From Cyanophora paradoxa CCMP329 (Eukaryota > Plantae > Glaucophyta): a DNA stretch of 64,000 bases. Positions 1 through 64,000 of this stretch are shown one piece after another. The notes beneath the pieces are model-generated. The model made no database searches, was not told the origin of the DNA, and saw nothing but the letters and a program-made list of their open reading frames with translations. The translations under genes were made by a program, and so were the position numbers. Location of the stretch: NCBI GenBank assembly GCA_004431415.1, contig QPMI01000133.1:1-64000 (forward strand), written 5' to 3'. Positions within the stretch are counted from its first letter, which is position 1. The number at the start of each line of letters is the position of its first letter.

Positions 1-1401
1 GAGAGAGGAGAGGGGGGAGGGGCGGAGACGGGAGCCTTGCCGTGCTGATGCGTCCCGATTTGCGCTGCAGCTCTCGGGCCCTGTATCGGCGCGGCGAGCG
101 CAAGAGGCTTCCCTGCACAGCACGCGGTGCGCCTGGGCCCGCGCCGGGGGCGCCGCCCCATCGGCCGATGCGAAGGCTGCGCTGGGTCGCAGGGCGAGCG
201 CAGGCCGCTCGATCTCGCGCCGACGCTCTCGCCTCGCCTACGGCCTCACGGCGGGGCGCGCCAGATCCCTTCAGGGGGTACAGAGGTGCGCCCGAGCCCC
301 TAGAGGGGGACGGCGGGCGGGTGGGGGGGAGGGGGCGGGAGGGGGGGGGGGGCGAGAGAGGAGAGCGGGGGAGGGGGCGGAGACGGGGAGCCTTGCCGTG
401 CTGATGCGTCCCGATTTGCGCTGCAGCTCTCGGCCCTGTATCGGCGCGGCGAGCGGCAAGAGGCTTCCCCTGCACAGCACGCCGGTGCGCCTGGGCCCGC
501 GCCGGGGGCGCCGCCCCATCGGCCGATGCGAAGGCTGCGCTGGGTCGCAGGGCGAGCGCAGGCCGCGCGATCTCGCGCCGACGCTCTCGCCTCGCCTACG
601 GCCTCACGGCGGGGCGCGCCAGATCCCTTCAGGGGGGTACAGAGGTGCGCCCCGAGCCCCTAGAGGGGGACGGCGGGCGGGTAGGGGGGGAGGGGGCGGG
701 GGGGGGGGGGGGGAGGGGGGCGAGAGAGGAGCGGGGGAGGGCGGAGACGGGAGCCTTGCCGTGCTGATGCGTCCCGATTTGCGCTGCAGCTCTCGGGCCT
801 GTATCGGCGCGGCGAGCGGCAAGAGGCTTCCCCTGCACAGCACGCCGGTGCGCCTGGGCCCGCGCCGGGGCGCCGCCCCATCGGCCGATGCGAAGGCTGC
901 GCTGGGTCGCAGGGCGAGCGCAGGCCGCGCGATCTCGCGCGACGCTCTCGCCTCGCCTACGGCCTCACGGCGGGCGCGCCAGATCCCTTCAGGGGGTACA
1001 GAGGTGCGCCCCGAGCCCCTAGAGGGGGACGGCGGGCGGGGGGGGGGGGGGGGGGAGGGGGGAGGGGGGGGCGAGAGAGGAGAGGCGGGGGAGGGGCGGA
1101 GACGGGAGCCTTGCCCGTGCTGATGCGTCCCGATTTGCGCTGCAGCTCTCGGGCCCTGTATCGGCGCGGCGAGCGGCAAGAGGCTTCCCCTGCACAGCAC
1201 GCCGGTGCGCCTGGGCCCGCGCCGGGGGCGCCGCCCCATCGGCCGATGCGAAGACTGCGCTGGGTCGCAGGGCGAGCGCAGGCCGCGCGATCTCGCGCCG
1301 ACGCTCTCGCCTCGCCTACGGCCTCACGGCGGGGCGCGCCAGATCCCTTCAGGGGGGTACAGAGGTGCGCCCCGAGCCCCTAGAGGGGGACGGCGGGGGG
1401 T

Positions 1402-27884: not shown

Positions 27885-28779
27885 AGGCGCTAGCGCTTGT
27901 CGTAAAGGAGCACATCAGCAGCTGCTGCAGGCGGAGTCAACGCAGCCTCCGGATCCTGATCATGAATTCGAAAAGGCGATGCTAATCGAAGACGCAGCTT
28001 TAAGCTGAGGAAAATTATTCTTTTGCCTCATGATCATGCATGATCAGTGCCCTAGGCCTGCAGCTGCGGCTGAAAAATTCTAGATCTAGCATTTTTCAGA
28101 GCTTCTGTGCGCGATTCGGCGAACCCCCCCCCCCACCCCCACCCCGTGTCAGCTAGAGCTGCCCGCCACGATTTAATATTAATGTTGCAAACAGCAGCTT
28201 GCAATTGTGCAAATGTCGTACTTAATTACGTATACAATCACATGCGAGTTTTGCGCTCAGACAGACTGAAAGACGTCGACTGCGCATGCGCATGCCATGA
28301 TGCAGCTGGATCCAGAGTTCGCAAGGTTATGGATTTCTCGCGAGATTAATTTGCGATTCATCGTTGAAGGCACCGAGACCAACTTATATTTGATTACTCA
28401 GCAAATGCATCGACTCGGCGATGTCAGAAAACATCAGAACGATTATTAAATGGGGGGGGTGCGGGGGGGCTTGCCCCCCTGCTTGTTGCCGTGGCGATAA
28501 ATTGCCGAAACTCCGAATTTGATTTTTGGTGAATTACCGGCCACAGCCTCTAGTCTACCGTGTAATACTTAATTACCGCGCGGACATATCTACTGCGCTA
28601 CCATATTACTGCGCTCAAAATCTTTAGAACGCAGTAATTTGGTAGGATATACCCCCCTGGGAGCACGCCGGGAGCGTAGAGTAGGGCGCGCGGGATAGCG
28701 GCGACCGGTGGGCCCCCGCAGAGACTCCGAAGCGTGTCCGAAAACCTCCCCAAGCCACCCCGCTCGCCAGAGGGCTAAC

Positions 28780-31700
28780 ATGCAGATCCCGACGATCGGG
28801 ACCGCGCCGGAGCTGCCGGACCGCCTCCCGACGCTTCGGGTGGCTTCCATCAACACCCAGAGCAGCCGCGGCCCCAGCCGCATCGCCTGGCTCGCGACCT
28901 TCCTCCGCGAAGCTGACCCCGACATCCTGGCAGTTGTCGACCACCGCTGGCACCAGGAGGATGCCGGGACCACCGCACTCCGGCCAGAACCGGGCAGCAT
29001 CCGGGCCGCCGCCGCGGCTTTCCAACACACACATCGCATCATCGCGCGCCCGGCGCCTCTCGACCGGTCTGGCGCAGGTTACAAGCGCGGGGTCGCCTTT
29101 ATTGTTCGCAACAGGCCGCGCAAGGCAGCCGCGTTCGCCGTGCGGGAGCTCCCTCTTCCAGAGCTCGCCCCGGCGGTGGCCGACGACGTCCTCGCGGTGG
29201 AGCTGACCCTCCCGTCGCCGTCCCCCCGGCCGCCCGAGACCATCATCCTCGTAGCTATCTATGCCCCGAACGCCGCGGATAAGCAAGCCGAGCTCGCGGA
29301 AGAGCTGACCAACTGCTTCAACAGCCCGCGGTTCAGCGCCGCCCACCTCATATTCCTAGGCGACTTTAACGCGTTCGCTGACCCCGCTCTCGACTCTCGC
29401 GGACACCGGACGCACCAACCCTTCGACCATTGGGCTGATGCCCTAGCGCAGCTCGGCCTTGAAGACGTGCTCCGGCGGCGCATGCCGACGACGCCACTCT
29501 TCACGCACTACACCTCAAAAGCCGCGCCCTCCCGCTCCGATGCTGCTCGCCTTGACTACATCTTCCCTGCGCTCTCGATCGCAGACCGCGCCGTTGCCGT
29601 CGGCGTCGCTCTGTGCGCGGGCCCGGAACATCGGCCGGACCACGACGCGGTCTTCGCCGAATTCCTTCTTCCCTCCGCCGTCCCCCGCGCGACGCCTCGA
29701 TATCGCTTTGACGATCGCATCCTGCAGCTCCAGCGGTTCCGGGAAAAGGTCGAGACGATCGTCCAGCGGGCGCGCGCCGGCCACCTCGCCGGGTGGAACT
29801 ACGTGCCCGACACGGGCACGCCGGAGTGGCTCGATTGGTTCGACGCCCTCTGGGCAGAGATCATTCGGGCGGCAAAGGACACCCGCTTCGCCCTCAACTC
29901 GGCGGCCGCAGCCCAGCGGGCCGAGGTGACCGCGGACATCCGCCGCGTCGCGGAAGACCTCGCGGCCGCAGCCAACGAGTCCGAGGAACAGGGAGAACTC
30001 TTAGACATGCTGCGAGACTCAGTCTCGGAGTTCTGGGCCCTTGCTGACTCCTCCCGCGCAGCCCGCCGAGCGGCGGCGCGGGCCCGAGCGCTCGACCAAG
30101 TTCTGCGCCTCGACCCGTCCGTCGCCCGCGCGATCCGGTTTGGTGACGCCGCCCACTCGATCCCGGCCCTGCACTCGCCGGATACCGCGCCTAGACCCCC
30201 GTCCGAGCCCGAGGGGCTCACCACCGATCCCGCCCTCATAGCCGCCCGTGTCCATCGCCATTTCCAAGCTATGAATACTGCTCGTCGTCCCATGTCAGAG
30301 CATGCGACACCGTGGCCCGCCCCGACGGTGCTCGGCCTGCCCTCGCGGGGCGCTGTGCAAATACCGTCCGGGCAGCCCGGTGAGCGGCTCGAAAGTGACA
30401 TGGAATCCCCAAGCATTGCCGCGCTCGAAGCGCGCTTGCGCCGCCTTTTCTTGCTTCGCCCTGGCGCCTCGCTTTCTAAAGCCGAGGCTGAATTCCTTCT
30501 CCGGGTCTGGGACCCCCTGCCCCTGCACGCACGCCGGGCGATCGCCGGGCAAATCACATCTGGGGAAGCGCTGGAAGTCCTGCGGAGTATGAACGCGCGC
30601 ACGTCGCCGGGGCGTGACGGGCTGACTGTTAAATTCTATCTGCACTTCTGGGACATACTAGGCGACCTCGTGGTCGAGTCATTCCGCACGGCGGAAGCGG
30701 TCGGGTGCTTCTCCTTACGGCAACGCACGGGATTGATGATCCTCTTATACAAAAAGGGCGCGAGGGACAGGATCGAGAACTGGCGCCCGATTACTATCAT
30801 GCCGATCGACTTCCGGCTGTTCGGTGCCATCATGGCCCGACGCATGAACACACACGCGATGCACCACACGACATCGCCATGCCAAGCCGGCTTCATGCCT
30901 GGGCGTGCGGGCGCCGGCAACGTGTACCTGCTGCAGGCGCTGGTTAGGCTGGCCGAGCGTGAAGGGCTATGTGTCGCAGGCTTCAACAAAGACTTCCGCC
31001 AGGCGTACGATCGCGTGGAACATGTCTGGGCGCTGCGCACCGTCGCGACAATCGCGTACCCGGACGACTTCGTCTTCAAACTGCGAGCGTCGCTGAAGGG
31101 CATCCGGGTCTTCATCGTGATTAATGGGGTAGAATACGAGGTCGCTGTTCTAGTCGACTGCAGCACCCTCCAAGGAAACCCGATGTCGTGCGCACTCTTC
31201 AACACGCAGCAAGAACCGTATACCCGGGCGATACTGGCGGACCCCCGCATCCCCGGCGTCCTCATCCCGAACCCTCGCGGCGGCCCCCCCGTCCGAATCG
31301 TACTAGTCATCTTCGCTGACGACAACTTCGCGATCACCATCCTTCCGGCCGGGGACCCCGCCGCCCCCTTGCTCCTCATCCTAGCGATCGCTGACGCCTT
31401 CCATGACGTCTCCGGAGCCCTGCTGGGGTACCCCAAGTGCGCGATCCTGCCGCTGGGGACAATCGCGGGAACGGCGCCCCCCGCCTGGGCTCAGCCGTTG
31501 CTGGCAAGGGGCATTCAATGGGTACACGAAACCAAATCGCTCGGGGTACCGATCGGGCCGGACCCCGACTACAGAGCCGCCTGGCAGCGGGTGGCTGACT
31601 CCATGCTCACAGCCGCTGCCAAATTCCGCCTCACAGCCCTGAGCCTGCCAGAGCGGGTCATGATAGCGAATGTATATATCGCAGCAAAAATCTGGTACCT

Positions 31701-33567
31701 GGCCATGTTCATACCATGCCCGAGCGACGTCGAAGCCCGCATCGCTGCGATATACCGCGGCGTCATCTGGCCCGGGCGCAAGCGCGGTAGGATCAGCCAG
31801 GCAGTAGCCGCCCTCCCCCCGGAATGGGGGGGTATAGGGGCCGTAAACATACCCGAGCGGATGCGGGCGTGCGCGGGGTCCATCCTGCGCCTCCTCTGCG
31901 ACCCCACCCGCGAGGCTTGGAAGGACCTGCTCATGTACGACATCGCCCACGCGTCGAGCGCGGCCGTACGGGCCACGCTCCTGAGCGCTCCAGAGCTGGT
32001 ACTCGGCGCCTGTACCCCCCTGGGGACGGCGAGGGGGCTCCCGGCCTCCTACGCCGCCCTGCCCACGGCCCTCAAAGTCAGCAACGAAGTGGGACGAGGG
32101 CGGGCCCCTGAGTCCCTCCCAACTAGCTATGAGGCGTACCTTGCCGAGGCCCTCTGGTTCAACCCGGCCCTGTCGGAGCAGAGCTCGAGCCCCTGGGGCC
32201 GGGCGCCCGCGGACGTCAGCCTTGCAATGCGCGGGATCGGGACCGTAGCGGACCTGATCCTGGCCCTCCAGCGCCCGCTGAGCGGGCCGGTGCCGATGTC
32301 CCTAGGCCAGGCCAATCACGCCGCCACCCTGCGGGGACAGATTCGGGCACGGATGACGAGCGAGGGGCGCGGGACGCCGGACCTGGCCCTCGGCAGGGCC
32401 GCGGAGTTCCGCATCTTGGTCGGGGCGCCGGGGCCCGGGGCCCCGGCCGAACGCCTGATCCTATTCGGCGCCGCGCCCCGCACGGGGCCGGCCCTGAGCA
32501 TTCCCGTGCTCCGCGACGGCACGCTCGACGTCGCGGGGGCGGAGACGCTGGCCGCCCCCCCACCGACCACCACCCTCCGCCGCGCCGTCGTCTCCACGGT
32601 CCCGGCCAAGACGCCGTCCCTCCGGGCCCGGTTCCCGGCCGGCCGCCCCGTCTACGTCGCCGCGACGGACCGGGCGCCCTGGGTCCCGGTCGGGCTCCTC
32701 CTTGGCACGGGCCACCGCCGGAAGCGCTGGGCCGAGGCCACGATCGGCAACGTGTACGCGGCGCTGGCTAGCTCACAGGAGAACCCGGGCATCCTTACCG
32801 TGCGCCTGGGCCCCCCCCCCCCGGGTCAGACTTGGGACCGGGTATGGCGGCAAGGGGGCCGGTGCGCAGCGCTCACCGGTCCCGAGCGCCAAACGTGGAT
32901 GCTGGCCCTCCACGGGGCGCTGGCGACGGGCTCGTTCCTCCACCGATCCCGCATCTGGGACGGGCCGCAGTGCCGAATCTGCGCGGACCCTTGTGAGACG
33001 CCGGACCACGCGTTAATCGAGTGCCCGCACGCCCGCGCTTTCTGGGCAGAGCTCGTGCAGGAGATCAACACTAGGTGCGGGACGCGCCTTGAATGCACGT
33101 GGGCGCACATCCTGTCGGCTTTCTCGGCGATGCCAAGGCGCCAGGGGCCGCGGCCGCGCGCCCTCATCCCCATCCTGATCGGCATCGGCCTCCACGCGAT
33201 CTGGCGCCTGCGAGCCCGGTTCATAGCAGATCAGTCGCTGGCCACGTACCCCACCACAGCCGGGGCATGGCGGCTGTACCGCACCACGCTTTGGCTCCGC
33301 GCGTTGGACGCCAACGTACGGGCTGTATCCGCTGAGGCGGGGGTTCTCAACGTGCCGCTACCGGAGCCCCTTGACCCCGACGAGCCGGAGGCGAGCATGC
33401 TCGCGGGCCTCCTCCCGCCCTCGGCGCCCCGCCCCTCACGCGCCTCGTTCGACGCGGTGTGGGGTGCGCACGGACTCGTGTGCTGCCGCCCCGACCCCAC
33501 TCAACTCCGCATCGCGAGAGGCACGCTCACCGCAGAGCCCGAACGTTCCGACGCCGACACGAGCTAA
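28780..33567 (+). CDS. ORF2-type polyprotein: APE endonuclease, reverse transcriptase, C-terminal CCHC zinc finger (1595 aa from ATG 28780)
   Basis: APE motifs VASIN, IYAPN, GDFN, RLDYIF, PDH. RT motifs SPGRDG, NWRPIT, QAGF, DFRQAYDRV, QGNPMS, FADD. C-terminal CRIC..ETPDHALIEC. Intronless and uninterrupted. Confidence 0.96.
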   Translation: MQIPTIGTAPELPDRLPTLRVASINTQSSRGPSRIAWLATFLREADPDILAVVDHRWHQEDAGTTALRPEPGSIRAAAAAFQHTHRIIARPAPLDRSGAGYKRGVAFIVRNRPRKAAAFAVRELPLPELAPAVADDVLAVELTLPSPSPRPPETIILVAIYAPNAADKQAELAEELTNCFNSPRFSAAHLIFLGDFNAFADPALDSRGHRTHQPFDHWADALAQLGLEDVLRRRMPTTPLFTHYTSKAAPSRSDAARLDYIFPALSIADRAVAVGVALCAGPEHRPDHDAVFAEFLLPSAVPRATPRYRFDDRILQLQRFREKVETIVQRARAGHLAGWNYVPDTGTPEWLDWFDALWAEIIRAAKDTRFALNSAAAAQRAEVTADIRRVAEDLAAAANESEEQGELLDMLRDSVSEFWALADSSRAARRAAARARALDQVLRLDPSVARAIRFGDAAHSIPALHSPDTAPRPPSEPEGLTTDPALIAARVHRHFQAMNTARRPMSEHATPWPAPTVLGLPSRGAVQIPSGQPGERLESDMESPSIAALEARLRRLFLLRPGASLSKAEAEFLLRVWDPLPLHARRAIAGQITSGEALEVLRSMNARTSPGRDGLTVKFYLHFWDILGDLVVESFRTAEAVGCFSLRQRTGLMILLYKKGARDRIENWRPITIMPIDFRLFGAIMARRMNTHAMHHTTSPCQAGFMPGRAGAGNVYLLQALVRLAEREGLCVAGFNKDFRQAYDRVEHVWALRTVATIAYPDDFVFKLRASLKGIRVFIVINGVEYEVAVLVDCSTLQGNPMSCALFNTQQEPYTRAILADPRIPGVLIPNPRGGPPVRIVLVIFADDNFAITILPAGDPAAPLLLILAIADAFHDVSGALLGYPKCAILPLGTIAGTAPPAWAQPLLARGIQWVHETKSLGVPIGPDPDYRAAWQRVADSMLTAAAKFRLTALSLPERVMIANVYIAAKIWYLAMFIPCPSDVEARIAAIYRGVIWPGRKRGRISQAVAALPPEWGGIGAVNIPERMRACAGSILRLLCDPTREAWKDLLMYDIAHASSAAVRATLLSAPELVLGACTPLGTARGLPASYAALPTALKVSNEVGRGRAPESLPTSYEAYLAEALWFNPALSEQSSSPWGRAPADVSLAMRGIGTVADLILALQRPLSGPVPMSLGQANHAATLRGQIRARMTSEGRGTPDLALGRAAEFRILVGAPGPGAPAERLILFGAAPRTGPALSIPVLRDGTLDVAGAETLAAPPPTTTLRRAVVSTVPAKTPSLRARFPAGRPVYVAATDRAPWVPVGLLLGTGHRRKRWAEATIGNVYAALASSQENPGILTVRLGPPPPGQTWDRVWRQGGRCAALTGPERQTWMLALHGALATGSFLHRSRIWDGPQCRICADPCETPDHALIECPHARAFWAELVQEINTRCGTRLECTWAHILSAFSAMPRRQGPRPRALIPILIGIGLHAIWRLRARFIADQSLATYPTTAGAWRLYRTTLWLRALDANVRAVSAEAGVLNVPLPEPLDPDEPEASMLAGLLPPSAPRPSRASFDAVWGAHGLVCCRPDPTQLRIARGTLTAEPERSDADTS

Positions 33568-47558: not shown

Positions 47559-48767
47559 ATGCAGGCTCTCGGAGGAATTCGAAACCGGGTTGCTCCCATG
47601 GTCCTCGTTCTCGGATTCTGGGCCGCGGCGGCTTCCGGAGCCTGCCAGTGCGGTGAGCTCGCCAGCTGCAGCGACCACCGGGAAATCGATCTTTCGCGAA
47701 CTGTCCGCTCGCCGCGATTTTCGCAGCCGATCCCGTCACGCTCACGAGCTCCTACTGGCGAGCGTCGCACGCGTTCCTCGCCACCATCGTCTCCTCGAGC
47801 GCGGCGACCGCGGGGGAACAGGCTTTCGAAGGTGCGTGCTCTAGATCTAGATCTTTGCATGCGCACGCGTTCGCACGCCCGGCCCGCGGCCGGCGCTCCG
47901 GATCCCGGCTCAGCGCTAGCGCTCAGCGCTCGCGCCGCAGCCCGCGTGTTTGAACAGTACAAGGGCTTCTTCTTGCCGAAGGATGCGAACATCGGCATCA
48001 AAACCTCGATCGGCGAGTGCGGTGCCAGCCTCCAAGTGCGCCGCGGGCCGGGCCCGCCGGCCGGCCGCGCGGGGCGATGGAGACGATTTTCGCGATCGCG
48101 AGCGATCAAATTTTCAGGTCGGGACGGCGTTCGTGATTTTCGCGAACATCGTGGATGGCGCGAACCTGGACAACGACGCCCGAGCCTTATCGAACCGCCT
48201 GCTCGACGCCAACGCCTGCCTCGTTGCCGTGCCCCAGAGCGCGGTCTCGCCCTGCGGCATGGCGTGCGCCGCATTAAATTTTCCCGGAGTCCTGCGCAAC
48301 GGCTACCTGACTCTGATTTCGCGCAGCTACCTGCGCTCCCGCTACTGGTGCCCGGGCTCCCGTCTCAATTGCGGCCTTCTGCAGAACACGGCCAACTGCA
48401 CGCTCGACACCTGCACCGGTCGATGCGCGGTCGCCCCGGACCAGGCGTTGTCTTGCTACAATCCCCAGGTTGAATTCGGCCCGCGCACGTGCTCGTGCGC
48501 CCGGCCCTCCTCTGTTCTCGGGTCGATTAATTCGATCTTTCTTATAATTATCCGATGATCTTGGAATCCGCGAGCAGAAAGGTTCCCGCGTGCCCTGAGG
48601 CGGCGCGTGTCAGCGGCGCCACGTGCGACGAGAACACGTGCGGGGCGTGCCGCGCGGAGTTCTACGGGCCGCCCCCGGCCCGCCAGCCGCTCTGCAGCGA
48701 GTCCTGGCTCGGCTGCACCCTTGGGGACGGCCTCCTGAGCCAGGCCCCGGTCGGTATCACGGCGTGA
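47559..48767 (+). CDS. Secreted TIMP/NTR-module-like protein with Cys-rich C-terminus
   Basis: Signal VLVLGFWAAAASGA followed by CQC, then SYWRASHAFLATIV, RVFEQYKG and IKTSIGECGASLQ|VGTAFVIFA. This matches the CxC...YKG...T....CG..L..G..Y.I pattern of TIMP/netrin modules. Confidence 0.65.
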
Positions 48768-49997: not shown

Positions 49998-52900
49998 TTA
50001 AAGACTGACGATTGCACTCGGTTCCACGCCGATTTCGGTGGCGATGCCCCGAATCGTGTGGGCGAAGACGGGCGGCCCACAGATGTAGAAGAACCCTGGC
50101 GGACTTGCATTAGCTCTGGTTCGATTTGAGTGCTTTTGAATCTAGATCTAGATCTAGAGCGCCGGCGCCGTCAGAAATGAAAGAGGATTCGGTTTTCACG
50201 AACGTTCGTTAATTATTTAGATTGAAATGTGTTCATTTTAACGCAGAGCCACGTGCACGGCGCGGGGGGCGCACGGAGTGCCTTGGTCCTGTGCACGACG
50301 GAGGTACGGAGGAAGGCGGCATCGACGCGGCCCGAACGGCGGTGGGCCGCCTGCGCGAGCCACTCCGCCGAGGGCGGCTGGCCCACGAAGAGGAAGAGCT
50401 CCAGGGCGGGGCACACCGACGCGCACTGCGCGCGGGGTAGGGGAGCGGCGGCATGAGGGGCGCGCTTTGAATTCGTATACACTTATTGCCAATTGCAATT
50501 AGAATTGCAACTGCATGTGTGCCTGCAGAGAAAGCACCTCTTCGAGCCAGTCGAGCTCGGGTATGTCTTCGGCCGACTCGAAGCAAGCGACGAGCTGAAC
50601 GCGGTGTGAGCATTTGTATAAGACTCTGAGATACAGTGGTAGTTATGAGTTGATTAGAGGCCGGACCTTGAGTCGGAGCCGTGTGTTGGGGGGCGCGCTG
50701 GAGCCCTTGCTCCGGTCGAGGCCGAAGGACCGTGCGGACTTGGACCCGGAGCGGGCGGCGCGCCGCCGTCGAATGGACGCGGCTCCGGCGCCGGATCCGG
50801 CGCCGGCGGATCCGGACGGCGGGCGGGGCGCGAAGACCGCGCTGCGGGGGTTGAAAGCAGATGGGTTTCCCCCGGGGCCGGCGCCCGCCTGCGGTCGCCT
50901 CTGGTCCCCGTCGCCGCCGCCGCCGCCGTCGCCGTCGCCGGATCCGTCGGCGCCGCCGTCCCTGGCCGATGCTGACGCGGACCGCGACCGCGAGAGGTGC
51001 TTCACGTTGATGTCGAGGAAGCTCGCGGTCCCCAGCCCCGACGACTGCGTGCGAAGGACACTCGGAAATCAGAGGAAATGCGCGACCTGTAGACGTAGAA
51101 ACGGGCGATCGAACATTTGAGGACGGCGCGACCGGCAAGTTGTACAGCGATCGCGACGCGCCAGGGGCTGCGCCGCCCCGTCCCCAGGCTGACCCCGAAT
51201 CCCCGTCGAACTCCACCGGAACGACGGCGGCAGTGCTGCCCGGGCCGGAGGGCTCCAGAAGGTACTTGAAACTCGTGCGGGAGCTCTTGCTGTGCTTTGG
51301 GCTCTTCGGATCCGGATTCGAGTTGGAGGGGCTCGAGCCGGAGCTGGTCGGCCGCGGGTTCGAATCCGCCGCGGGGGGCGAGGCCGCGAAGGGGGGCGGC
51401 GCCAGCGGTTCGAACTCCGGATCCGGCGCGTGGGGCCCGCCTTGCGCTCTCCGCGGCGAGGGCTGCTCATTGTAGTCCGACACGACGTCCACCGAGTGCA
51501 CGGCGGCCGGGAGGAGGAGGAGGCTCGCGGGCTCCGGGCCCTCGCGCGGAACCAGGCGCACGACGGGGCTCGCCGCCGCCGTCGCCGGCGACAGCTGCTG
51601 GGCCTCCGTGGCCAGTTCCAGGGCGTGCTCGTCCTCCATCTTGCGGATGTGGGCGACGAGGTCGAGGAGGGGCAGGATGCCCGTCCCTGCCACCACCTGC
51701 GGCCCCGCGCGCGTCAACGTTGCGCGCTCGACCGCCTTGACCCCGGCCCCGCAAAACACTAAAAGCAACAACCCCCGATATCGAATCTATCAGAGAATAT
51801 TAATGGCAGCACCGCAATAAGGTCCCCCTCGAACGCTTTTGACCCCGCAAAATAAATTTAAATCTTCGACCGAGGGTTTGATTCTATATATCAGAGAATG
51901 GCAGCACCGCAATGAGGTCCCCCTCCGTGTCGTGCCCGAGGCGAAGACCGAGCCCGAGGGGCCCCCGAACGCTGCGCGAGATGCCGTCAGGCGCGTAATT
52001 ATAATTGTTTAAATTGAATGCCCCCTACCGAATCTGGGAGCCCAGAGGGGCGTCCAACAGGTACGGCGACATGGCTCCCGTCGGGTAGCGCCGGAGCCAG
52101 AGGTCGTGGGTGGCGCTGTAGTCGAGGTCGCCATCGGGATCGACCGAGGGGCGGCGCGCCCGCGTGGGCGCGGGGCGCGCCCCGCCCGCGTGCGCGATGC
52201 GGACGAGCGAGTAGTGGCGATGCACGTCCCGCCCGTTGATGGTGGCCGTCACCTCGAAGTGCTGCCCCAGGTAGCGGAGGTCGTCCCTGCACGGTCCGAG
52301 TCGCAAGAGCGAATCGAAACGATTAATTATAACAGTGGCACGGGGCACGAATCCGAACGCACTGGTGGTACGTGGGCGGGACGTCGCACGCGAAGCGCAC
52401 GCGGAAGACGGGGCGCGAGCTCGGGCAGACGGCCGTCCGCTCGATGACCGTCCACGTCTGCACGCCCGCCACCGCCGCCTCGTCGTCGCGGTCCCCTTCC
52501 GGGTGTAGGACGGCCACGCAAAGCTGCGTGCGCGGCCAGTATATGATTTTGTGCGTTCGACGGTGAGTAAATCCAGAAATAGAGTCCAATGCATATGTAC
52601 GGACCTCTTGCAGCATTCTGTGGGCGTGAACGCTGTGGCGGTGAGCGCTGTACCCCCCGAACGCCATCCGCCCACCGCTGCCGTACAGGAACGCGCTAAT
52701 GTCCTGGCCGATCATCGAGTGAAGGAGGGCGGTCCCTGTCCGAAGCGCACGCGTCAAGGAACTCGAAAGATAGATTGAAAACGGATACGGAAAAGGTCCA
52801 GGCAAGGCCGGGATCCGGATCACCTCCGGGGTGCGTGGACAGTATCGGCTCGACGTCGAAAACACTGCTGCAGCGTTAGCAGTGTGGCAGGGAAAGTTCT

Positions 52901-55900
52901 CTTTTAAATTTAAAGCGCACCGGTCGCCAACCAATACCCACTGCGATCCAAGCCGAATCATTCGTTCAAACTCTGACGGCGTGAGCGGCTGCTCGGGGAT
53001 CGATCAGCCTTTACATTGATGTCGACAAAAAGAGCTCTCAGAGTCTAATGATTCGAGTCGGCTCGACGAACGAACCGCGACCTTCTTGGCGTTGATGGAG
53101 TCGAAAACGACCTCCACCCGGCGCTTGTTGTAGAAAGAAACGACCTCGCCGAGCGCGAAGGCGACGGCGAGGACGGCGACCCAGAGGAGGAATGCGCTCC
53201 GGACGGACGGCATCATGAGGTGCTGGCCCAGGCCAACGTTGGCGAGCGCTCCGAGGCACACGATCCACCCGTTCACTCGGTGGGCCGTTCGGGTGACGAA
53301 CGCCCAGCGCTTTGGCTTGCGCGACAGGTGCATGTGCCTGCACGCACGAGCGCGAGATTAGAGTCAGCTGAACATCGAAGCCGTTAGAATTGCGGAGCTC
53401 AAGCGATCGACAACGACACCGCACTTGACTAGCATGCCCAGCCCGAGCTGCAAGGCGGAGTCGACGGCGAGCGCCAGGCCCAGCAAGCTGATCAAGTACG
53501 CGTGAATATTAATGGAAGATCTTGAGCGTTTTTCGATCACAACTGAAATCAAAACGGGGCCGCACCCGTGCGACTTCGCCTCTGCTGCACTCGCTCGCGA
53601 GGCAAACGCGGCAGATGCGGCAGGTACGGTGATGGACAGCGCGAGTTGCATCATCCTGCAGAGAGCGACACGGCATGCGGATCGCAGTTCGGTCAGACAT
53701 GCAGAAATTGCGAGGGAGGGCGCGATCGCGATCGCAAACCCGCGGTGAATTTTGAGCCACATTGGGATGTGCTTCAGGTGGCGCACGATGAAGATGCTCA
53801 CGGGGGCGATGACGGCCCACGAGGCCCCCATCGCAATCGCGTGGACTGCGAAATTAAAGAAAGAGATCAGGCTCGGGGCGTGATCATGATGCACATGCGA
53901 ATGGCAGCATTAATTTCATTGCCGTGCCACGGTGTACGCACCGGTGTACGCATTGTCGTAAACACGGCCCTCGGAGACGCTGAAGTCTACACTCTCTCCG
54001 GATCCAGCTGAGCTCGAGCTCGAGCTCGACGAGCCCGTGTCGGAAGCGGGGGAGTTCGAGCCGGTTCCGGCGCTCGAGGATCCAGCTGCAGATCCGGCGG
54101 CTGCGTACACGCTGGCGCTCACGCCCGCCATCGCGAAGAAATCGAGTGACCCGCGCAGGACGTCCGTCGGGCGGTGCATAGAAAACTGCGCGCGCGCGAT
54201 AGATCGCGTTACGCTCGACGCCATGATTATGCACGTTGGCTAAGCCGAGTATAATTAGATATCGATAAGCGCACCTCCGTCCCGCTCGCCCTCCAAGCGA
54301 AGATGAGAGCTGCAAAATCGAAGACGGATCAGACGCTAGTATACGTAGGCCTAATCATAATTATAAGGCGTCTACATCCTTCTCATTAATAATAATCCAC
54401 GGCCGGCTCCACGCGCGCGCACGCTGGCGGCCGGGCGAGAAGGGTTTGTCCTGCGCCGAGTCGCCCGTGTTCCACGCCCTCCGCCAGCGGAACGTCTGCG
54501 TGCCGGGCGAGCGGGACGCATCCACGAGGACCACGTCCTGTTTGGCGTCTGCCGCGGCCGCGCACGCGCAGACGTCGCGATTGGCGAGTCGGCCCGAATC
54601 GAACGCGATCGCGAGGCTTCGGATATATAATTATTCCGCGTGCGCCGCGCGCGCACCGGTGGCGGGGCCGCGGAAGCCGAAGGCCTTCGCGTCGATGGCC
54701 AGAGGCGACCCGGAGGCGTTGTGGCGCATCCAGACCACGTCGGCGTCCGCCATGCTGTTGCCCAGCCCCAGCGCCACCCACCCGTCGCAGGCGCAGGTGA
54801 CCGCCACCTCGATCTCGCGGGTCGCGACGAGCATGGACCAGCGCAAGCTCAGCACGTCGTTGAGGCGAGCGGATGCCGTGTACGCGACCGGCGCCGACGA
54901 CGTCGCGTTCGAATTCGCCGACGGCGTCGACGTCGACGTCGTCGCGTTCGCCGTCGCGATCGGGCCGGACGACGTCGCGTTGCCGTTGCCGGATCCGGAG
55001 AGGTCCTGCATGGATTCATCCTCTTTCCAGGGCGGCGGCGTGGCTATGAAGACCTGGTTTCGAAGCGATCAGTTGAGATGGATCCGGAACTATCGCGCTA
55101 ATTATAAGGAATTAAGACTCGCGCTAGCGCTCGCGATGCGTTGCTCACTGAGCGCGGCATGGTCTTGATGAAGGGGGCCCACGCCGACTCGACCATGTCC
55201 GTGAATCGCCGCGCACGGATTTCGTTCAGCACCGGAGCCGCCAGAGTGTCCCACCTGCAGCCGCATGCAGAACGAATCGGCGTTCAGGAATTCGAAGGAC
55301 CGGGAATTAACGTCTCCATGCAGGCGAACCAGTACGGGTCCGTGTCGCGGACTGTCTTTATTGTGTCTGTGATGATGGCCACCGCGAGGGGGCCCACCAG
55401 GCCCCCGGTTTGCTCCTGTGCGAAAGTATTAATCGAAGCTGAATGTGAGCTTCAAAACGATGTGCAACATTAATATTAATCAACGCAATCGAGGTGGAAC
55501 TAGATATAGCGCTAGCTATAGCTATGTAGCTATCAGTGAAAGATCTAGATAATTTCAGCTTTGATTTGAACGGACGGATGAGCACCTTTTCGGCAAGGAG
55601 GCCCACGAGGAGGTCGGCGTCGCCCGGCGAGGGGTACACGGCCTGCGCACGAGACGGCGTTCATAGAAAGTTGAGCATTATTAGAACCTCTTGCAGATGT
55701 GATGATCTTCTAATCAAACCATATGCGTGGATCGGGAGGGCGAATTCGAATGGAATCCGAACCTGCAGCGCCTGCTGGAGGGCCGCGCTCGAGGTGACCT
55801 TGTCCCACGTGGCCAGCGCCGGGAGCCCGTGGGCGGCTCGCGCCCTCCCGTAGCTCGGGAGGCGGGCCAGCCGCCCCCTCGCCAGGTCCTCCGTCCCCGC

Positions 55901-56593
55901 GTCCGGCAGGGGCCAGAGCCCGGCCCGGAGACTGCGGCGCGGAATCGGATCAGGTTATTTGAGCTTTAGATGATATGCATGGTTACTAATTAATTATATA
56001 AGTTAGATAAATTAAATCTGAAGAAGCTCTCACAAGTCGGCGTAGTGGAGGTCGGCCTTGGACGAGTACGTGGAGGCAAGGCCTCGGATGAGCCCCGGCA
56101 TCCCTTCCCCGCTCCCCTGCGCATGCGTCGCCGAGTCGGCGTCACGCGCAAAAATTGGCAACTTGCAATGGGAAATGCAATAAACCGGCACCTCGAGAAA
56201 GGCAGCGCTGTAGTACCCTTCGTAAGCGGAGAGGGGCCCCTCGGCCGACATCGCGCCGTTCGAGTCGAGCCGGGCGTAGATCTTATAATTGCGGCGTCGG
56301 CCACAGGGGTGTCATGATCAGAACGAAGCCCAACTTGGCGAGCTCGGCGGCTCGAAGCGGCAGGGGCGGCTCGCACCCGGGGAAGCAGGGTGCGGTGGAC
56401 GAGCGAAGCCGCGGCCGCGAACTCGAGGGGCACGCGCGCCTCGCCCGACGCGTTGTACTTGTATGCGGGCAATGTGGAGCCTGCGCACGCGGGCGCCCAA
56501 TCTCGGAGTCGGCAATGCCACGCGTACAGCGCGGTAGGCAGTGCAAGGCGTCGAACCGAAGAACAGGGGGATGAATTCCTGCACGGTGACGCG
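49998..56593 (-). CDS. Multi-exon fusion: animal-type heme peroxidase (C-terminal part), DOMON, cytochrome b561, cytochrome b5, FAD- and NAD(P)H-binding reductase; 5' exons not found in window
   Basis: Peroxidase: RVTVQEFIPLFFG, EFAAAASLVHRTLLP, DLARGRLAGLPSY, DADLLVGLLAE, VRDTDPYWF. DOMON: GWVALGLGNSMADADVV, FSMH. b561 His sites: VHAIAM, WLKIHR, KSHG, AHRVNG. b5: HPGG, RHS. Reductase: RHYS, GAMSPYL, RGPLG, AGTGILP, ICGPP. Confidence 0.85.
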
Positions 56594-57281
56594 CTGCGGG
56601 CACGACGGGGAAGAGTCAGAGGCCCGAGGGTTGGTTCGAAGGGATCCGAAGAGCTAAGACTTCGGAAAAGGGTATCTAGATCTAGACCGAAAGGTCCGCC
56701 CTATTTGCAAGCTTCTGTGCAGAACAGGACCTCCAATGTTTCTATTGATCTTGGAACTCCGAAGTTCTTCTTGGATAAAAACACAGGTCGGTGTGAGGGT
56801 ACTGGACACCAATTAAATCCGACATTATCCTATCTTATTCAGTCTCGCCACTTCCCTCTATCTTGAATTCTCAGTCTCCTCAGTGCCAATATGCATAAAT
56901 CTTTCATAGTTTTTATAACTTTATGCATATCTTTGCACTAACTTTATCCCAATCCTCAGTATCCCATTGCATAAATCTTTATCTTTCCCCCAAAGTTTCC
57001 CCCAAACTATGCATAACTTATCATAACTTTATGTATTCTTATCATAGTCCTATAGCTAGCTCGTTTTCCCGCGATGTACCCTGTTTTGTGCCTATTCTGT
57101 GCATCGGGAACTTGCTCGATAGCATCGCAAGCGTCATCGCGATCGGGATTGGCGATATCGATGCCATCGGGAATTTCTCGATAGCATATGCATCGGGGAT
57201 CGATAGAAAAAGGTGGTGGACGCAATCGACCCCTCGCAAAATTTGATGTCAACTTTTTATAAACGCTGTCATCCTACAAAA

Positions 57282-57832
57282 ATGCCTTTCACTGTTCAAT
57301 GCATCCCGCTGTCTAAAATGCCGCCACTGATCCCGTATCCAATTGTGGGGCAACTTCCATACCTGAGTCAAAGCAATGCAACCGCTGCAAGGAAACGAAG
57401 CCGGCTTGTGAGTATGGAAAGAGGAAGCTGAAATCGGGGAACATTACTCTGCAAGCATATTGTGCCCCATGCTTTAAAATCGTTCACACCGAACAAGCTT
57501 CCAAATTTGCCTCAAAGCCAAAGCCTGAAATCGAGTCCAAAACTTGCACCAAATGCGAAGAGACTAAGCCAATCTCTGAGTTTTACAGGAATGCTATGAA
57601 TGCTGACGGGTTCAACTCATCATGCAAAGATTGTGTCAACGAATATACTAAAATGCATGCCGAATCAATGAAGATGTGCCCAAAGATTAACGTCGAATCT
57701 AAGGTCTGTTCAGCCTGCAAGATCGAAAAGCCTGCAAGTGATTATAATAAAAGAAGTACTGCCAAAGATGGTCTATATTCAAAATGTCGCAAGTGTTTCA
57801 ATGAGACTCGCAAAAAGCACCCCAAGAACTAA
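57282..57832 (+). CDS. Protein with three ESKxCxxC..KP....CxxC zinc-binding repeats (frameshift near 57355)
   Basis: ESKQCNRCKETKP..YCAPC, ESKTCTKCEETKPISEF..DGFNSSCKDC and ESKVCSACKIEKPASDY..DGLYSKCRKC share one frame. The ATG at 57282 is in a different frame. Confidence 0.7.
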
Positions 57833-58082
57833 TACAAATTTTCGAGGCTGATGTTCCCTATTTTTTGTGCATCGTGATCGGCGATGCCATCGAGAAAAGT
57901 ACATATGTACATATTCGAAAAATGAGGTGGTGGACACCGATACACCCATTGGAGAGAAAAGCCCCGCCCACTATGCAAGATACATGCCTTTCTTATGCAT
58001 GATCTATGAAAAATAACAATAAACCCAGTCGTCAGACAAGCTGCCTTGGCTGCGCCTCTCTCATTCTTCGAATTCGAATTCT

Positions 58083-58346
58083 TTACATAGGAGCACTCGC
58101 AGTTATCTCGCTCATTTTTACCACAGTCCCGCGATTAAAAGCTTGCTCTACAATCGCTTCCTTTGTGAGTGGAATTGGAATCCCAGCAGCAATACAGGAT
58201 TGAACTTCTTTGGCTACAATGTCATCAGTTGCCGACATTGCACGACTTTTCACTACATTCGTAATCCATTCAGCTGGGGAGAACGCAATATATTCCATTG
58301 CTGACTTTTCTGTATTCGATAAAATCACTTCGTATATGTTCGACAT
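58083..58346 (-). CDS. 87-aa hypothetical viral protein resembling small phage fibre-adjacent proteins
   Basis: Intact ORF (LSNTEKSAMEYIAFSPAEWITNVVKSRA..IPIPLTKEAIVEQAF) directly downstream of the C1q-like gene. Resemblance is from recall, not a search. Confidence 0.65.
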   Translation of the reverse strand: MSNIYEVILSNTEKSAMEYIAFSPAEWITNVVKSRAMSATDDIVAKEVQSCIAAGIPIPLTKEAIVEQAFNRGTVVKMSEITASAPM

Positions 58347-58368
58347 TCTCTACTCTAAGGAAACAAAA

Positions 58369-59278
58369 TTAATCGATGGCGGTTAGCATGGCTATATAAA
58401 ATCCACATCTGTCTCCCATACATTCTGAACCCACAGCTCTACATAATCCCCGGAGAAAGTTCTGCTATTCCTCCTGTCTGCATACCTATCCAGGTCCCAG
58501 CAGGATTCGCATTGAATCTAAATTGACTCACCGTAGAGCCATTTATTTTTATTTCAAGCAGTGATATGCCACTCGAAACATTCGCTGATAAAGAAGACCC
58601 CAAAAGAATGTATATTCCTTTTGTCTGACATGTGAAACGACCATCAGTAAACGTTGATGTCCCAAGCCTTGAAAAACCAGTAGTATAACTGTTGAATTTA
58701 ATAAATGTGCTTCCTGATGCAAGTGCTGTGGTTCCATATCTTCCCATCATAGGGTGACTGTTCATTTTAACACTACTACTGAATGTGCCGGTGGTTCCAG
58801 TAACCCCTCCATTTGCTGTAAGAAGCCCTGAGAAAGTCCCAGTGGTTCCATTTACTCCTCCACTTGCTGTGAGCAACCCAGTAAATGAGCCTGTCCCACT
58901 AACTGTCGCATTTCCATTGACCCCCAAGCCAGTCCCGATCCATGCCCCGCCACTGTAAACTTGGAAAGCCGCCGAATTCCTATCAGCCGGATTAAAAGCC
59001 GTTTTGGAATCCTGTTGACCTTCATATAGATTTTCTTTGGTGACCAGCCCCGAAGAGATTGCGGGTCGATTAGATACGATCATTTGAGTAGCTTTAACGA
59101 CTCCATCAGCCTTGTCAGCTCGGAGTTCTTTGACTCTGAGTATGCTTTGGTCATTAAAAGAATCGGTTTTCGCTGTCTCAGTCGAAGGGTGGCTTGGAGA
59201 TAAATCATAAACAGTGTGTTGGACATTGTGGACAGCACTTGCACTCAAAGAAAACACAGGCGTGAATACAGTTGTCAT
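58369..59278 (-). CDS. Fibre-like protein with Gly/Thr repeats and C-terminal C1q-like domain (two apparent 1-bp deletions at 3' end)
   Basis: GTFSGLLTAxGGVxGTT repeats and GRFTCQTKGIY. The shifted frame continues LSPGDYVELWVQN..CGFYIAML. Confidence 0.7.
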
Positions 59279-59299
59279 CTTTAAATTGCTCTTTACTTA

Positions 59300-60763
59300 T
59301 TAAGCGAGAATATTATTGTTTTGGAGAGGTCCGACAGCAATCCAATGGAGTTTAAGGGTGCGATTGCTTTGGATCACACTGTTATAATTGATGTCCGAGT
59401 AACAAGTGAATATCGCAATCCAAGTGAATTTATTTTTGAACCCAATGCGATTTCCGAACTGATATTCAGCAGAGAGATATATGCTATTGGTGAAATCGAC
59501 ACTTGTTAAAATAATACTGTTTTCGAGAGTAGCAGTAATTACAGGATCACTAAAAAATGGGGTTGAGAATGTAACGGTTCCCGATACTGTGGTAAAATCC
59601 CCTTTGTAATAGACTCCGGCAGGAATTACTACATCCATTGTCCCTTGTTGCACATATGCATTTGGATTCACATAACTACCGAAATTCGTGAGCAACTCGA
59701 TGCTGTGATTGTGAGTAGGTGGCGAAGTGGGTGTGTTAATTAAATCGTCATAGTTCCCGCTTGTAGCCACAGCATGCAAGTTTGGTGTATTAACTAAATC
59801 TGTATAGCTCCCACTTGTAGCCACAGCATGCAAGGTCGGTGCAATAGGGGTGTTAGTTAAATCGTTGTAATCACCACTTGTGGCAACAGCATGCAAATTC
59901 GGCTTAGTAAATAACCTATCCCATGTCCCATTGAAAGGGAGTGTAGATTCTGATATAATTACACCTTGATCAATCCAACGAGGTATATAGCTTGTGAAAT
60001 CGGGAGGATTTACAAGATCATAGTAATTTCCTGTGTATGCTACACTACTCCAAGTCGGCTTCTGAATGATATCACTCCACTTCCCACTAAATCCCGCCGG
60101 CACATCTGTAAGCTCTTTATAGCTCACCTTTTGTTTCGGTATAGACAGCTCGATTGGTGAGAATGCACCCGAAAGGCGATTTTCAGAGGTGAAATACATG
60201 AGACTTTGACTGTTAGGGAATACATCCACGAGATTAAAGGTGAAATTCGTGGGCAATTCGAGTCGACTAATTGGGGTGTTGTCGCCTAATATAAATTCGG
60301 CGCCTGTATGCACGACCGGATTTCTTTGGATATACATATTTGATGCACCTATTACAGGTGCCACAATGGGCACATCCGAATTAACGAGATTGCAAGTGAT
60401 GGAGAAAATGGTTTTGGGGGCATACAGATTGCAATCAAAGGTAATCGTGGCGGGATCAATAGTAGGATCGACATTTGAACAGATCTGAAACATCCACCCA
60501 CCCACACAGTTGCAATTTAAATTGCGAAAGGCTGTGCCTGCCATTGCATCCACATAGCCGATCCCATTTGCAATGTCATAGATGTGACCAAACTCGTAAC
60601 CGAAAAGGTCATTCCATAGGTTAGAAGCCATAGCTCCCATCACATAGCCTTTTAGATTAACAATTAGGTCATTGGATTCACTGGGTATATTGCCATGGGT
60701 TATATAAAATTGATTATCCAATACAGCATTCTTTACTGTCGTTTCTACTATGGGTTCCGTCAT
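59300..60763 (-). CDS. 487-aa tail-fibre-like protein
   Basis: Three LHAVATSGxYxDLxNTP repeats plus related units. C-terminal VTFSTPFFSDPVITAT...LHWIAVG resembles an H-type lectin/fibre tip. Confidence 0.8.
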   Translation of the reverse strand: MTEPIVETTVKNAVLDNQFYITHGNIPSESNDLIVNLKGYVMGAMASNLWNDLFGYEFGHIYDIANGIGYVDAMAGTAFRNLNCNCVGGWMFQICSNVDPTIDPATITFDCNLYAPKTIFSITCNLVNSDVPIVAPVIGASNMYIQRNPVVHTGAEFILGDNTPISRLELPTNFTFNLVDVFPNSQSLMYFTSENRLSGAFSPIELSIPKQKVSYKELTDVPAGFSGKWSDIIQKPTWSSVAYTGNYYDLVNPPDFTSYIPRWIDQGVIISESTLPFNGTWDRLFTKPNLHAVATSGDYNDLTNTPIAPTLHAVATSGSYTDLVNTPNLHAVATSGNYDDLINTPTSPPTHNHSIELLTNFGSYVNPNAYVQQGTMDVVIPAGVYYKGDFTTVSGTVTFSTPFFSDPVITATLENSIILTSVDFTNSIYLSAEYQFGNRIGFKNKFTWIAIFTCYSDINYNSVIQSNRTLKLHWIAVGPLQNNNILA

Positions 60764-60792
60764 TATTTCTCTATTATGGCATTCTACAAAAA

Positions 60793-63700
60793 TTAAGGTC
60801 GCATTGGGAGAAGCTCGTATGTTCTGCCCTCTCGTTGTGCAATTTCCGCCATAAAGTCTGCATTTTCATTCATTATTGATTCAGCCATTCGTTCTGCTCG
60901 TGATTTTTTGGGTGCTGCCCTACTTGCTGGTGGTTGATCAGTTCTCACAACACTAAGACCATGCCCCTCGGCTGACCTCACCTCTAACCCACATCTCCTT
61001 CGGCTGTTTGGGTCACATTAAGCTCTGGTGTTGAGTATTTATTACCTGCCCTGCAATGGTTCTGTCTATGCAAGCACAACATAGAGCTCGGAATTTGTAT
61101 GCAAGCACAAGTCCAAGAGCACCGAGAATCGGCAAGAGAATGAGAAGCACTAACGTTCCTGGATCCATTCCTGGCGATCCGACTGGATTTGTAGGATTTG
61201 AGGATTATTAGGTGTCGTGTTCGGATCTGGATCAGTTGTAGGGGGATCTTTTGAATCGGGATCTGGCTTAGGTGTGTTTGGATTGGGATCGTTTGGTGGC
61301 GGTTCTGTCGACCCTGCTAATGATGTCGGCGCTGTGTATGCATTCGCAAACACGATGGGAGCCGTTGCTGGATTTCCTGTTGAAGACCCTGTAATTGCAC
61401 CATAGGTATCTGAGAGATATTTATATAATTCCTTTGTCACAGGTGGATTGCTCACAGATCGGCACACCCAAATATTGCATGTAGTATCATAGACTGTGTC
61501 CCTGATAAATGGCGGTAGAGCTGTCCCACTAAATGACTCAAAGAGCCCATTTCTCGATAGCAACCTATGGGCTGCATCACAGTTCCCACCCTCGAAATAT
61601 TTGGTAGCCGAAATTGCACCTTGCACATAAATATTGCAAGTCGAGTGCATTCCGATGCTATTTAGGTTGGGAGTGTATCTATCATCGAGCCGGACAGTGC
61701 ACACCCATGGGGAAGCGGTTTTAATATATTTCTTATCGCCCACTTCGATTACATCTGTATTTGGGTGGCTGTCAAGCTGAGTCCAAACAGCATCATATCT
61801 GAAAGTGTAATAAACTAAGAGACCATCTGTGGACGATGTGAAAGCAAAGAAGGTCATAAAGTCCGTGGATCCAAAGAAGTCAGCATTGGTCGATGTAAGG
61901 GTGACTCTGGGATAGCTCATGTTGACAGTCTCAGAAGGGTATGGAATATATGAGGTGTAATTGCGATTGAAAAGATAATAGTGAAATCCATCTGAGACAT
62001 TCGAGTGAGTGGGCAAGGTGACTGATAAGGTCTTACTTCGATTCTCAAACGTGTTCTGTATGACAATATTGCAAGTATTAATATATCGAGAATCGAAAAA
62101 GTAATTATTCGTTACTCGATTATCGATCAGAGTTGCATTGGTTCCATTAAATACGAAATTCTGCCCATTTATTCTCGTAGTATGGAGGTCGGTCACATCG
62201 AGAGGATACCTTATTTTCAAGCGGTCTTCGGGGTCAAATCGCGGAATAGTTCCTGTTGCCTTCCAATTAATAGTAAAGGGAGGAGAAAGGGACACAGGTG
62301 GGATTGGAGTAAGATTAAACTTCGCAAAATACAATCCAACAGGATATCCTGACAGAGCATAGGTCACTGTTGCATTTCCGACAAGTGTAAAGCCGGTGGT
62401 TGTTATGTTAGTTGCAACAAATGGGGAGTAGCCGGCTGGTGCATTGTTAATAGAGGTGGTCGACCCATTATTGATCACATACAAATTCGTGTCAGTTATT
62501 TCAATAGTAGGAGGGGAAACAAATGGTGTCTCAAATGTGAAATTAAAATTCGCTGGAACCGCTGCAAGGTATCTATATGTTGTTGCTGATATCTCGGATG
62601 CCTGGAATACTTTGCTTCCCCTCTGCACTACATTACTGGTGTCTTTCACATTGTGATAGGATATACTGGGAGTTGGGGAGAGCACCAACGAAATAGCATC
62701 TGGTAAATCAGACTTCGTTATATACAGTTCTTTGAGAAACTCCTTTCTAAAAGGGGCGGTCAGATCTCCAATAGTAGCCGATGACCCTGCGACCACAATA
62801 TTACAGGTGTTTGCATTCAAAGTATAAACTGTGTTCCACCTCAAAGAATTCGCCCCAAGATCGAAATTCTGTGAGAAGGGCACGATATTGCTACCTTGTA
62901 AATCTCGGTAAACCTTCACTCTGGGTTTGCTATCGAATTCAGGGGTGATATAATTGATGTTAAGAGTGAAACTAATAGTAGCTTCGGAACTCAATGAGTT
63001 GTTTCGGATGATAAGTAAATTGTATGTCTCGTTAATGACAAACGAAACCTGAAACCCTGTGGAGGTGACATTTTGGATAAATGCTTTATTAGATTCATTA
63101 TTGTTATAGATAGGATTATAATAAGTAGTGTGATCCACCAATGAAACAGTGGGTATATTCGTCTCGAAACCTGTGACACCCAACTGATCCCAAGTGAATG
63201 TATATGTAGGTTTGCCTACGTAAGCGACATAGACCCCATTTGCGAGCTGCTGAGGGTATCCCTCGACAGTGTAGGTCTCAGTTCGCGAAACTGAGCGGGA
63301 AAGATTGCTGTTAAAGTCGTTGTAGCTGATCAGAGCTCTCTCATCAGTGGGTATTTGATTGGGTCGGAGTGAGTGATTTAATGGAAGGATTAAATTGGAG
63401 GCAAACATGGAAACTCCATGCATCTCTGACCATCTCAGATTCGACAAACCAACTCGGTATGTGTTATCAGTCGCGGGGTAAATGTTCCTTTTCGATAGAA
63501 TATGGGCTAAGGTAATTGCAAGCGCTCCATCTGCTGCAAACAGAGCATTAATTTCGGATTGCAAAGCCGCGATTTCGGTAGTGTGGGTCGTGAGGGTTCC
63601 ATCCTGACTTGAATCTTTTGTGTTCTTGTTCCTCTCGAACTCCAAAAACGCCTTTACGATGTCCTTGCCCAAAAGATCGTTTATATTGTCTCTGGTAATG

Positions 63701-63999
63701 TAAACATGGTCTGTTCTCAGTGCCTGTTTCTCCGTGGTAAAAGCCGGAATTTCCTCTGCAAATGATATAGTCGTTTTATCAAGTGCTAAGGATCTCACAT
63801 TCGGAGCATTCGCACCGATAATATTTACGACGCTCCCATTTTCCGTGATCTCTAAGACAGGTTTCGCGGGGTCTAATGTGAAAACGCTCTCTGTTATCTG
63901 GGGAACCGATGCGCTCTTCTGAATCACAAAGGATTCGATGTTTAGGTTACAGGTTGCGACATTGGTGGCGAAAAACGACTCGGAGTTAAGCGAGTTTAC
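60793..63999 (-). CDS. Large fibre/adhesin-like protein (>950 aa, open at window end) with probable C-terminal TM anchor after frameshift correction
   Basis: Motifs NIYPATDNTYRVGLSNLRW, NIVPFSQNFDLGANSLRW and FTFETPFVSPPTI..TTTGF..INWKATG, then a Pro-rich stalk. The shifted frame gives LVLLILLPILGALGLVLAYKFRALCCAC. Confidence 0.75.
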
Positions 64000-64000
64000 G

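Follow-up and report, generated by a model that had tools for sequence, protein, structure and literature searches.

A candidate CYBDOM-type membrane reductase with its own NAD(P)H-binding module and a peroxidase fold in Cyanophora paradoxa, one gene copy of which is interrupted by a probable Polinton-like virus

Introduction

Among the described systems closest to the locus reported here is the Arabidopsis CYBDOM HYP1/CRR, a three-haem reductase of ferric and cupric substrates; its b561 domain carries H211, H245, H278 and H314 (spacing 34/33/36) together with K234 (PMC10784544). Another is human DUOX1, whose peroxidase domain is without its haem ligand, with no haem shown there (PMC7794343). 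DOMON ferric reductases of Naegleria and oomycetes form a further group (PMC3591440).

Here we describe a gene of the glaucophyte Cyanophora paradoxa CCMP329. The window, that is, the whole stretch of DNA analysed, comprises 64,000 nucleotides (GenBank assembly GCA_004431415.1, contig QPMI01000133.1, positions 1 to 64,000 of the forward strand). A sequence-only reading of positions 49998-56593 had proposed a single-chain, DUOX-analogous path from NAD(P)H through FAD, b5 and b561 to an extracellular DOMON/peroxidase end, serving ROS production or iron reduction.

Results

Reading of the six frames revealed a collinear exon series from 56593 to 49998 on the minus strand, with 27 exons, 4026 nt and 1341 codons. 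The frame is free of internal stops and ends with TAA at 50000-49998. All 26 introns are GT-AG and measure 56-211 nt, GC3 is 0.87, and the GC content is 0.70 in exons versus 0.52 in introns. The exons are as follows.

Exons 1-7, minus strand: 56593-56557, 56480-56377, 56281-56192, 56116-56034, 55931-55763, 55642-55586, 55415-55330
Exons 8-14, minus strand: 55254-55149, 55053-54657, 54548-54423, 54309-54275, 54185-53942, 53845-53740, 53655-53566
Exons 15-21, minus strand: 53487-53425, 53337-53076, 52988-52921, 52864-52824, 52735-52605, 52523-52363, 52286-52029
Exons 22-27, minus strand: 51971-51908, 51696-51133, 51044-50667, 50594-50538, 50425-50275, 50095-49998

The joined 27-exon model was used for checking the frame and locating residues, and the searches were run on single exons or public proteins. 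Its exon 23/24 junction is uncertain, lying in a low-complexity region where the public model takes a later donor. The public models of this gene (tig00000523_g1831 t1-t3) have nearly identical junctions except at two places, a shortened splice (52605-52735) by which the second b5 His is lost and 13 extra residues ahead of the GTG motif (51696-51740). Both are contradicted by the paralogue protein and by RNA, which back the full-length exon 19, and both look like annotation errors. A 29-nt stretch made up of the last part of exon 22 together with its donor site is repeated 95 nt further on in intron 22 with 97% identity (51785-51925), and this duplication may provide a second donor in that intron. 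Just past the stop codon, plus-strand Cys-rich reading frames at 47950-48767 belong to a neighbouring gene, probably spliced; the plus strand also carries an ORF of 1619 codons at 28708-33567.

The domains encoded by the exon series, and one residue of the peroxidase fold considered further below, are located as follows.

55020-56593, minus strand: peroxidase fold of the animal (peroxidase-cyclooxygenase) type, C-terminal portion, spanning exons 1-8 and the first part of exon 9, with an approximate lower boundary
56392-56394, minus strand: codon for Arg where the proximal haem His would be expected, exon 2; a His lies one residue earlier
54880-55019, minus strand: linker rich in Ser, Thr and Asn that carries three N-glycosylation sequons; boundaries approximate
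54140-54879, minus strand: DOMON domain, exons 9-12; boundaries approximate
53130-53845, minus strand: five-helix cytochrome b561 domain, exons 13-16
52500-53100, minus strand: cytochrome b5 domain, running from the last part of exon 16 into the beginning of exon 20; boundaries approximate
51908-52499, minus strand: FAD-binding subdomain of the ferredoxin-NADP reductase / b5 reductase family, exons 20-22
49998-51696, minus strand: NAD(P)H-binding subdomain, exons 23-27, with GTG at 51687 and CG at 50081

The open frame and the domain order that had been claimed for this series stand; the window holds the peroxidase in its C-terminal part only, and the 27-exon model of this copy has neither a start codon nor a signal peptide.

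Exon by exon, Pfam recognised DOMON (exons 9 and 10), FAD_binding_6 (exon 21) and, weakly, An_peroxidase (exon 5). The public proteins added Cyt-b5 and a strong An_peroxidase match, with E values of 1e-21 for the window copy (public model P0005) and 2e-36 for the full-length paralogue; their DOMON match had an E value of 6e-14 and NAD_binding_1 was weak (E 0.05). The b561 family (PF03188) was matched by the paralogues only, with E values of 1e-4 and 1e-3, the best score of 22.7 bits falling just under the cut-off of 23. Matches in the PDB included DUOX1 for the peroxidase and, for the b5 and reductase module, b5 and b5-reductase/FNR structures, of which yeast NADH-cytochrome b5 reductase 1 was the best. 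Pfam gave no match to the gp91-type ferric reductase domain (PF01794), and the His residues are distributed among four helices, the b561 pattern; nor did the public proteins give a Pfam match to an EF-hand. The Cyanophora protein is not a member of the NOX/DUOX family.

All the haem ligands named in the sequence-only reading were located, and the flavin motifs as well. The likely haem ligands of DOMON are a Met at 54753 and a His at 54176, the four b561 His residues are at 53843, 53747, 53570 and 53282, and the b5 haem His residues are at 52833 (HPGG) and 52637 (HS). The reductase motifs RxY, GxxS, GTG and CG are all present. Every ligand is conserved across the paralogues, and the spacing of the b561 His residues is 32/31/41 in all three Cyanophora paradoxa proteins compared, with a Lys at 23 residues after the first His, an arrangement resembling that of HYP1. 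Five hydrophobic helices are predicted in the membrane part, and the loops that follow helices 1, 3 and 5 are basic. Because five helices with positive-inside loops are predicted, DOMON would lie outside and the b5 and reductase domains inside. Structures predicted from single sequences had pLDDT values of 36-37, too low to rely on. The NAD(P)H subdomain is split by a Ser/Ala/Pro/Gly-rich insert of ~290 residues (50667-51640), and a shorter insert is found at the same place in the full-length paralogue; this insert may be regulatory.

A full HMMER search with exon 16 returned three Cyanophora paradoxa proteins and one spurious repeat protein. The three are the product of the window gene itself, in its public models, and two paralogues. 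P0002 (tig00021493_g21899) is a partial paralogue 67% identical to the window copy, and P0003 is a full-length paralogue of 1399 aa, 47% identical, which has a hydrophobic, signal-peptide-like N-terminus and the same domain order. The public model of P0002 looks truncated at both ends, as RNA covers DOMON exons upstream of its annotated start and probably peroxidase exons too. Word-based homologue searches, uninformative on distant kin, had only Cyanophora proteins among the matches listed, and the metagenome scans and the viral scan found nothing. The ESM Atlas contains a cluster named "Heme peroxidase family protein" (179 members, 1490 aa) that scores 0.98 against the full-length paralogue; it is known here by three domains only, An_peroxidase (100% of members), Cyt-b5 (97%) and DOMON (88%). 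A weaker lead in the same resource is a ciliate cluster with b5, DOMON and FAD_binding_6. Early-diverging fungi may carry similar proteins, a further lead. The architecture is not unique, being found in the paralogues of the Cyanophora paradoxa genome and in the 179-member cluster, and the latter supports the earlier suggestion that similar architectures occur elsewhere. No published description of it was found in the freely accessible literature searched; the fusion is real, and it is apparently an undescribed variant of the CYBDOM kind.

Two RNA assemblies contained spliced transcripts from the closest paralogue only. The long pieces of these contigs were 82-90% alike to the window copy and the letters at two joints translate to P0002, so the contigs were assigned to that paralogue. 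Its RNA splices at the same positions; one contig of 872 nt joins DOMON to b561, and b5 is joined to the FAD domain. No contig in the two assemblies joined the peroxidase to DOMON or b561 to b5. The window copy and the paralogue RNA differed at 35 listed places, 26 of them at third codon positions; 21 differences were synonymous and 8 codons were changed. Such a pattern would be expected under purifying selection on the pair, which does not imply current selection on the window copy.

The two junctions unseen in RNA are one reason to ask whether the locus consists of separate neighbouring genes, or whether the b561 domain works on ascorbate alone with an independent reductase half; another is that the basic residue for ascorbate binding in HYP1 is retained. 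Against this, a single stop-free frame runs through the whole series, the full-length paralogue model has the domains in the same order, and domains co-occur in the 179-member cluster. The earlier reading had named as the sign of separate genes a stop at the peroxidase-DOMON or the b561-b5 boundary, and neither boundary has one. Because these boundaries lie inside exons 9 and 16, respectively, a stop or gene break at either is impossible without new evidence, and we consider separate genes or an ascorbate-only b561 very improbable.

The catalytic residues of the peroxidase fold were compared with those of myeloperoxidase, DdPoxA, a Limimaricola peroxidase and a bacterial peroxidase structure; bacterial peroxidases taken from plasmid records served as local references only. 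Both P0003 and exon 2 of the window copy have Arg where the proximal His is expected, and in both a His is found one residue earlier. The distal residues were compared for the paralogue P0003 only, the corresponding region of the window copy falling outside the window; here Asp is changed to Ala, His to Leu, Arg to Glu and Glu to Ser, and the distal Gln alone is retained. The propionate-binding Arg is also lost from the fold. One may suppose that the fold nevertheless binds haem via the shifted His, as an extra electron carrier or a non-canonical catalytic site, since both the window copy and the 47%-identical paralogue retain this His and the paralogue also retains the distal Gln. However, the other four distal residues and the propionate-binding Arg are gone, and a one-residue shift along a helix would normally point the side chain away from the pocket. 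We regard haem binding by the shifted His as improbable; judged by its residues, the peroxidase is probably a pseudo-enzyme.

The window copy aligns to residues 244-1399 of the 1399-aa P0003, and the counterpart of the first ~244 residues is absent from the window. Going upstream from the acceptor of exon 1, the first of the series, the GC content drops to 0.33-0.45 after about 110-140 nt, and intronless genes start there.

56730-64000, no strand assigned: end portion of a probable Polinton-like virus, low in GC and multi-copy, whose left edge is approximate (56.70-56.74 kb) and which extends past the window

The genes of the element include three on the minus strand that are fibre-like, of 925, 487 and 279 aa; there is also one gene of 87 aa, and a Cys-rich one of 78 aa resembles phage endonuclease zinc fingers. 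One of the fibre-like proteins has tail-type repeats and another has a weak H-lectin match; a Polinton-like virus of Cyanophora is reported to have phage-tail-repeat and H-lectin fibre proteins (PMC12220804). The assignment of the element rests on its low GC, its multi-copy depth, the fibre-like genes within the window and that report. In two DNA runs (2019 and 2024), neither necessarily independent of the assembly, one contig spans 54814-56826 without differences, and the DNA depth increases three- to four-fold from about 56.73 kb. The clean spanning contigs and the rise in depth indicate that the junction between gene and element is real and that the element is multi-copy. The possibility of an assembly chimera at this junction was ruled out by the clean bridging contigs in the two runs. 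Other copies of the element show small variants near 56796-56862 and 57356-57495.

Transcripts of the window copy were not seen: the two RNA assemblies held no long-piece RNA contig at least 99% alike to it, and its words were next to absent from four RNA runs. Since the RNA depth was low (2-6), the missing RNA is weak evidence; it suggests that the copy is silent. The sequence-only reading had overlooked the viral insertion and the absent transcript. The copy is interrupted in its 5' part by the probable Polinton-like virus and is probably silent or truncated.

A separate matter from the mechanism of the protein is whether the window copy is alive after all, with the virus lying wholly within an intron and being spliced out or excisable, or with a shorter form made from a downstream start. 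The 1341 codons without stop or frameshift, the intact ligands, the position of the insertion upstream of a normal acceptor site and the public models beginning at downstream ATGs all speak for it. The other introns, however, are only 56-211 nt long, the two RNA assemblies had transcripts of the paralogue only, and the words of the window copy were nearly absent from the four RNA runs. A live window copy seems to us doubtful but well within consideration, and we keep to the reading that the virus interrupts this copy, with silencing as the likely consequence.

Discussion

The account that we lean towards, with somewhat more than even confidence, is that the gene family encodes a CYBDOM-type single-chain trans-membrane reductase that is fed from NAD(P)H by domains of its own and bears a peroxidase cap, and that the window copy of the gene has been interrupted. 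From the ligand residues and from analogy with known proteins, we infer how cofactors would be bound and how electrons would move. In the cytosolic reductase domain, FAD would accept hydride from NAD(P)H and hand on single electrons to the b5 haem. From there, electrons would travel via the inner and then the outer b561 haem to the solvent-exposed DOMON haem, which would reduce an acceptor outside the cell or in a lumen; by analogy with HYP1, ferric or cupric chelates are the most likely. The peroxidase fold, with its catalytic residues lost, would serve as a structural or binding cap. The path from NAD(P)H through FAD, b5 and b561 to DOMON that had been proposed earlier is consistent with the ligands and topology; the peroxidase, with Arg in place of its proximal His, should not be read as an active terminus.

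An alternative is that the chain is a functional DUOX analogue ending on oxygen, producing superoxide or H2O2, with the disabled peroxidase fold structural as in DUOX. Reduced DOMON-type haems, for example those of cellobiose dehydrogenase, can feed Fenton chemistry, which counts in its favour. The overall layout is also shared, including the haem-less peroxidase homology domain (PMC7794343). However, the membrane core is b561 rather than a NOX ferric reductase domain, EF hands are absent in Pfam, the characterised CYBDOM reduces metals (PMC10784544), and a Met/His DOMON haem has no free oxygen site by established chemistry. We therefore think a functional DUOX analogue unlikely. The DUOX analogy originally drawn is sound for the layout, and the missing haem ligand of the DUOX1 peroxidase adds to it; as to ROS production or iron reduction, nothing favours ROS over metal reduction. 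A bolder form, to which we likewise give a low probability, would make this a family of eukaryotic oxidases, undescribed so far, that generate ROS and carry four haems and FAD in one chain; in it the DUOX design would have been reached independently on a b561 core and the peroxidase haem site independently lost.

If the CYBDOM-type reductase is what the family encodes, the fusion of b561 with b5 and an FAD/NAD(P)H module would stand beside the NOX/FRE family as a second and independent way of exporting electrons across membranes at the expense of NAD(P)H. It would offer a one-gene system for testing such export, whereas the characterised DOMON-b561 protein is run by ascorbate. The parallel loss of peroxidase residues would allow the role of the haem-less domain of DUOX to be compared on two unrelated scaffolds. 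The target for bench work is the intact paralogue g3689 rather than the interrupted window copy, and the locus itself is a plain example of a host gene interrupted by a probable Polinton-like virus.

With the cytochrome b5 reductase / nitrate reductase module, the Cyanophora protein shares a b5 domain followed by FAD- and NAD-binding subdomains, but here the module comes after b561 and its NAD subdomain carries the ~290-residue disordered insert. The Naegleria and oomycete DOMON ferric reductases likewise combine an outer DOMON, membrane haems and FAD/NAD(P)H in one chain, although their core is a ferric reductase domain and neither b5 nor a peroxidase fold is described for them (PMC3591440). 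DUOX1 and DUOX2 have in one chain an extracellular peroxidase homology domain in which the canonical haem ligand is missing, a two-haem membrane domain and a cytosolic FNR-type dehydrogenase (PMC7794343), and the Cyanophora protein differs from them in its b561 membrane domain, its added b5 and DOMON and its lack of EF hands. The CYBDOMs share with it an outer DOMON haem with Met/His ligands, a five-helix b561 with two His pairs similarly spaced and a basic residue after helix 1. CYBDOMs are fed by ascorbate, however, whereas the Cyanophora protein has a peroxidase fold at its N-terminus and brings b5 and FAD/NAD(P)H domains of its own.
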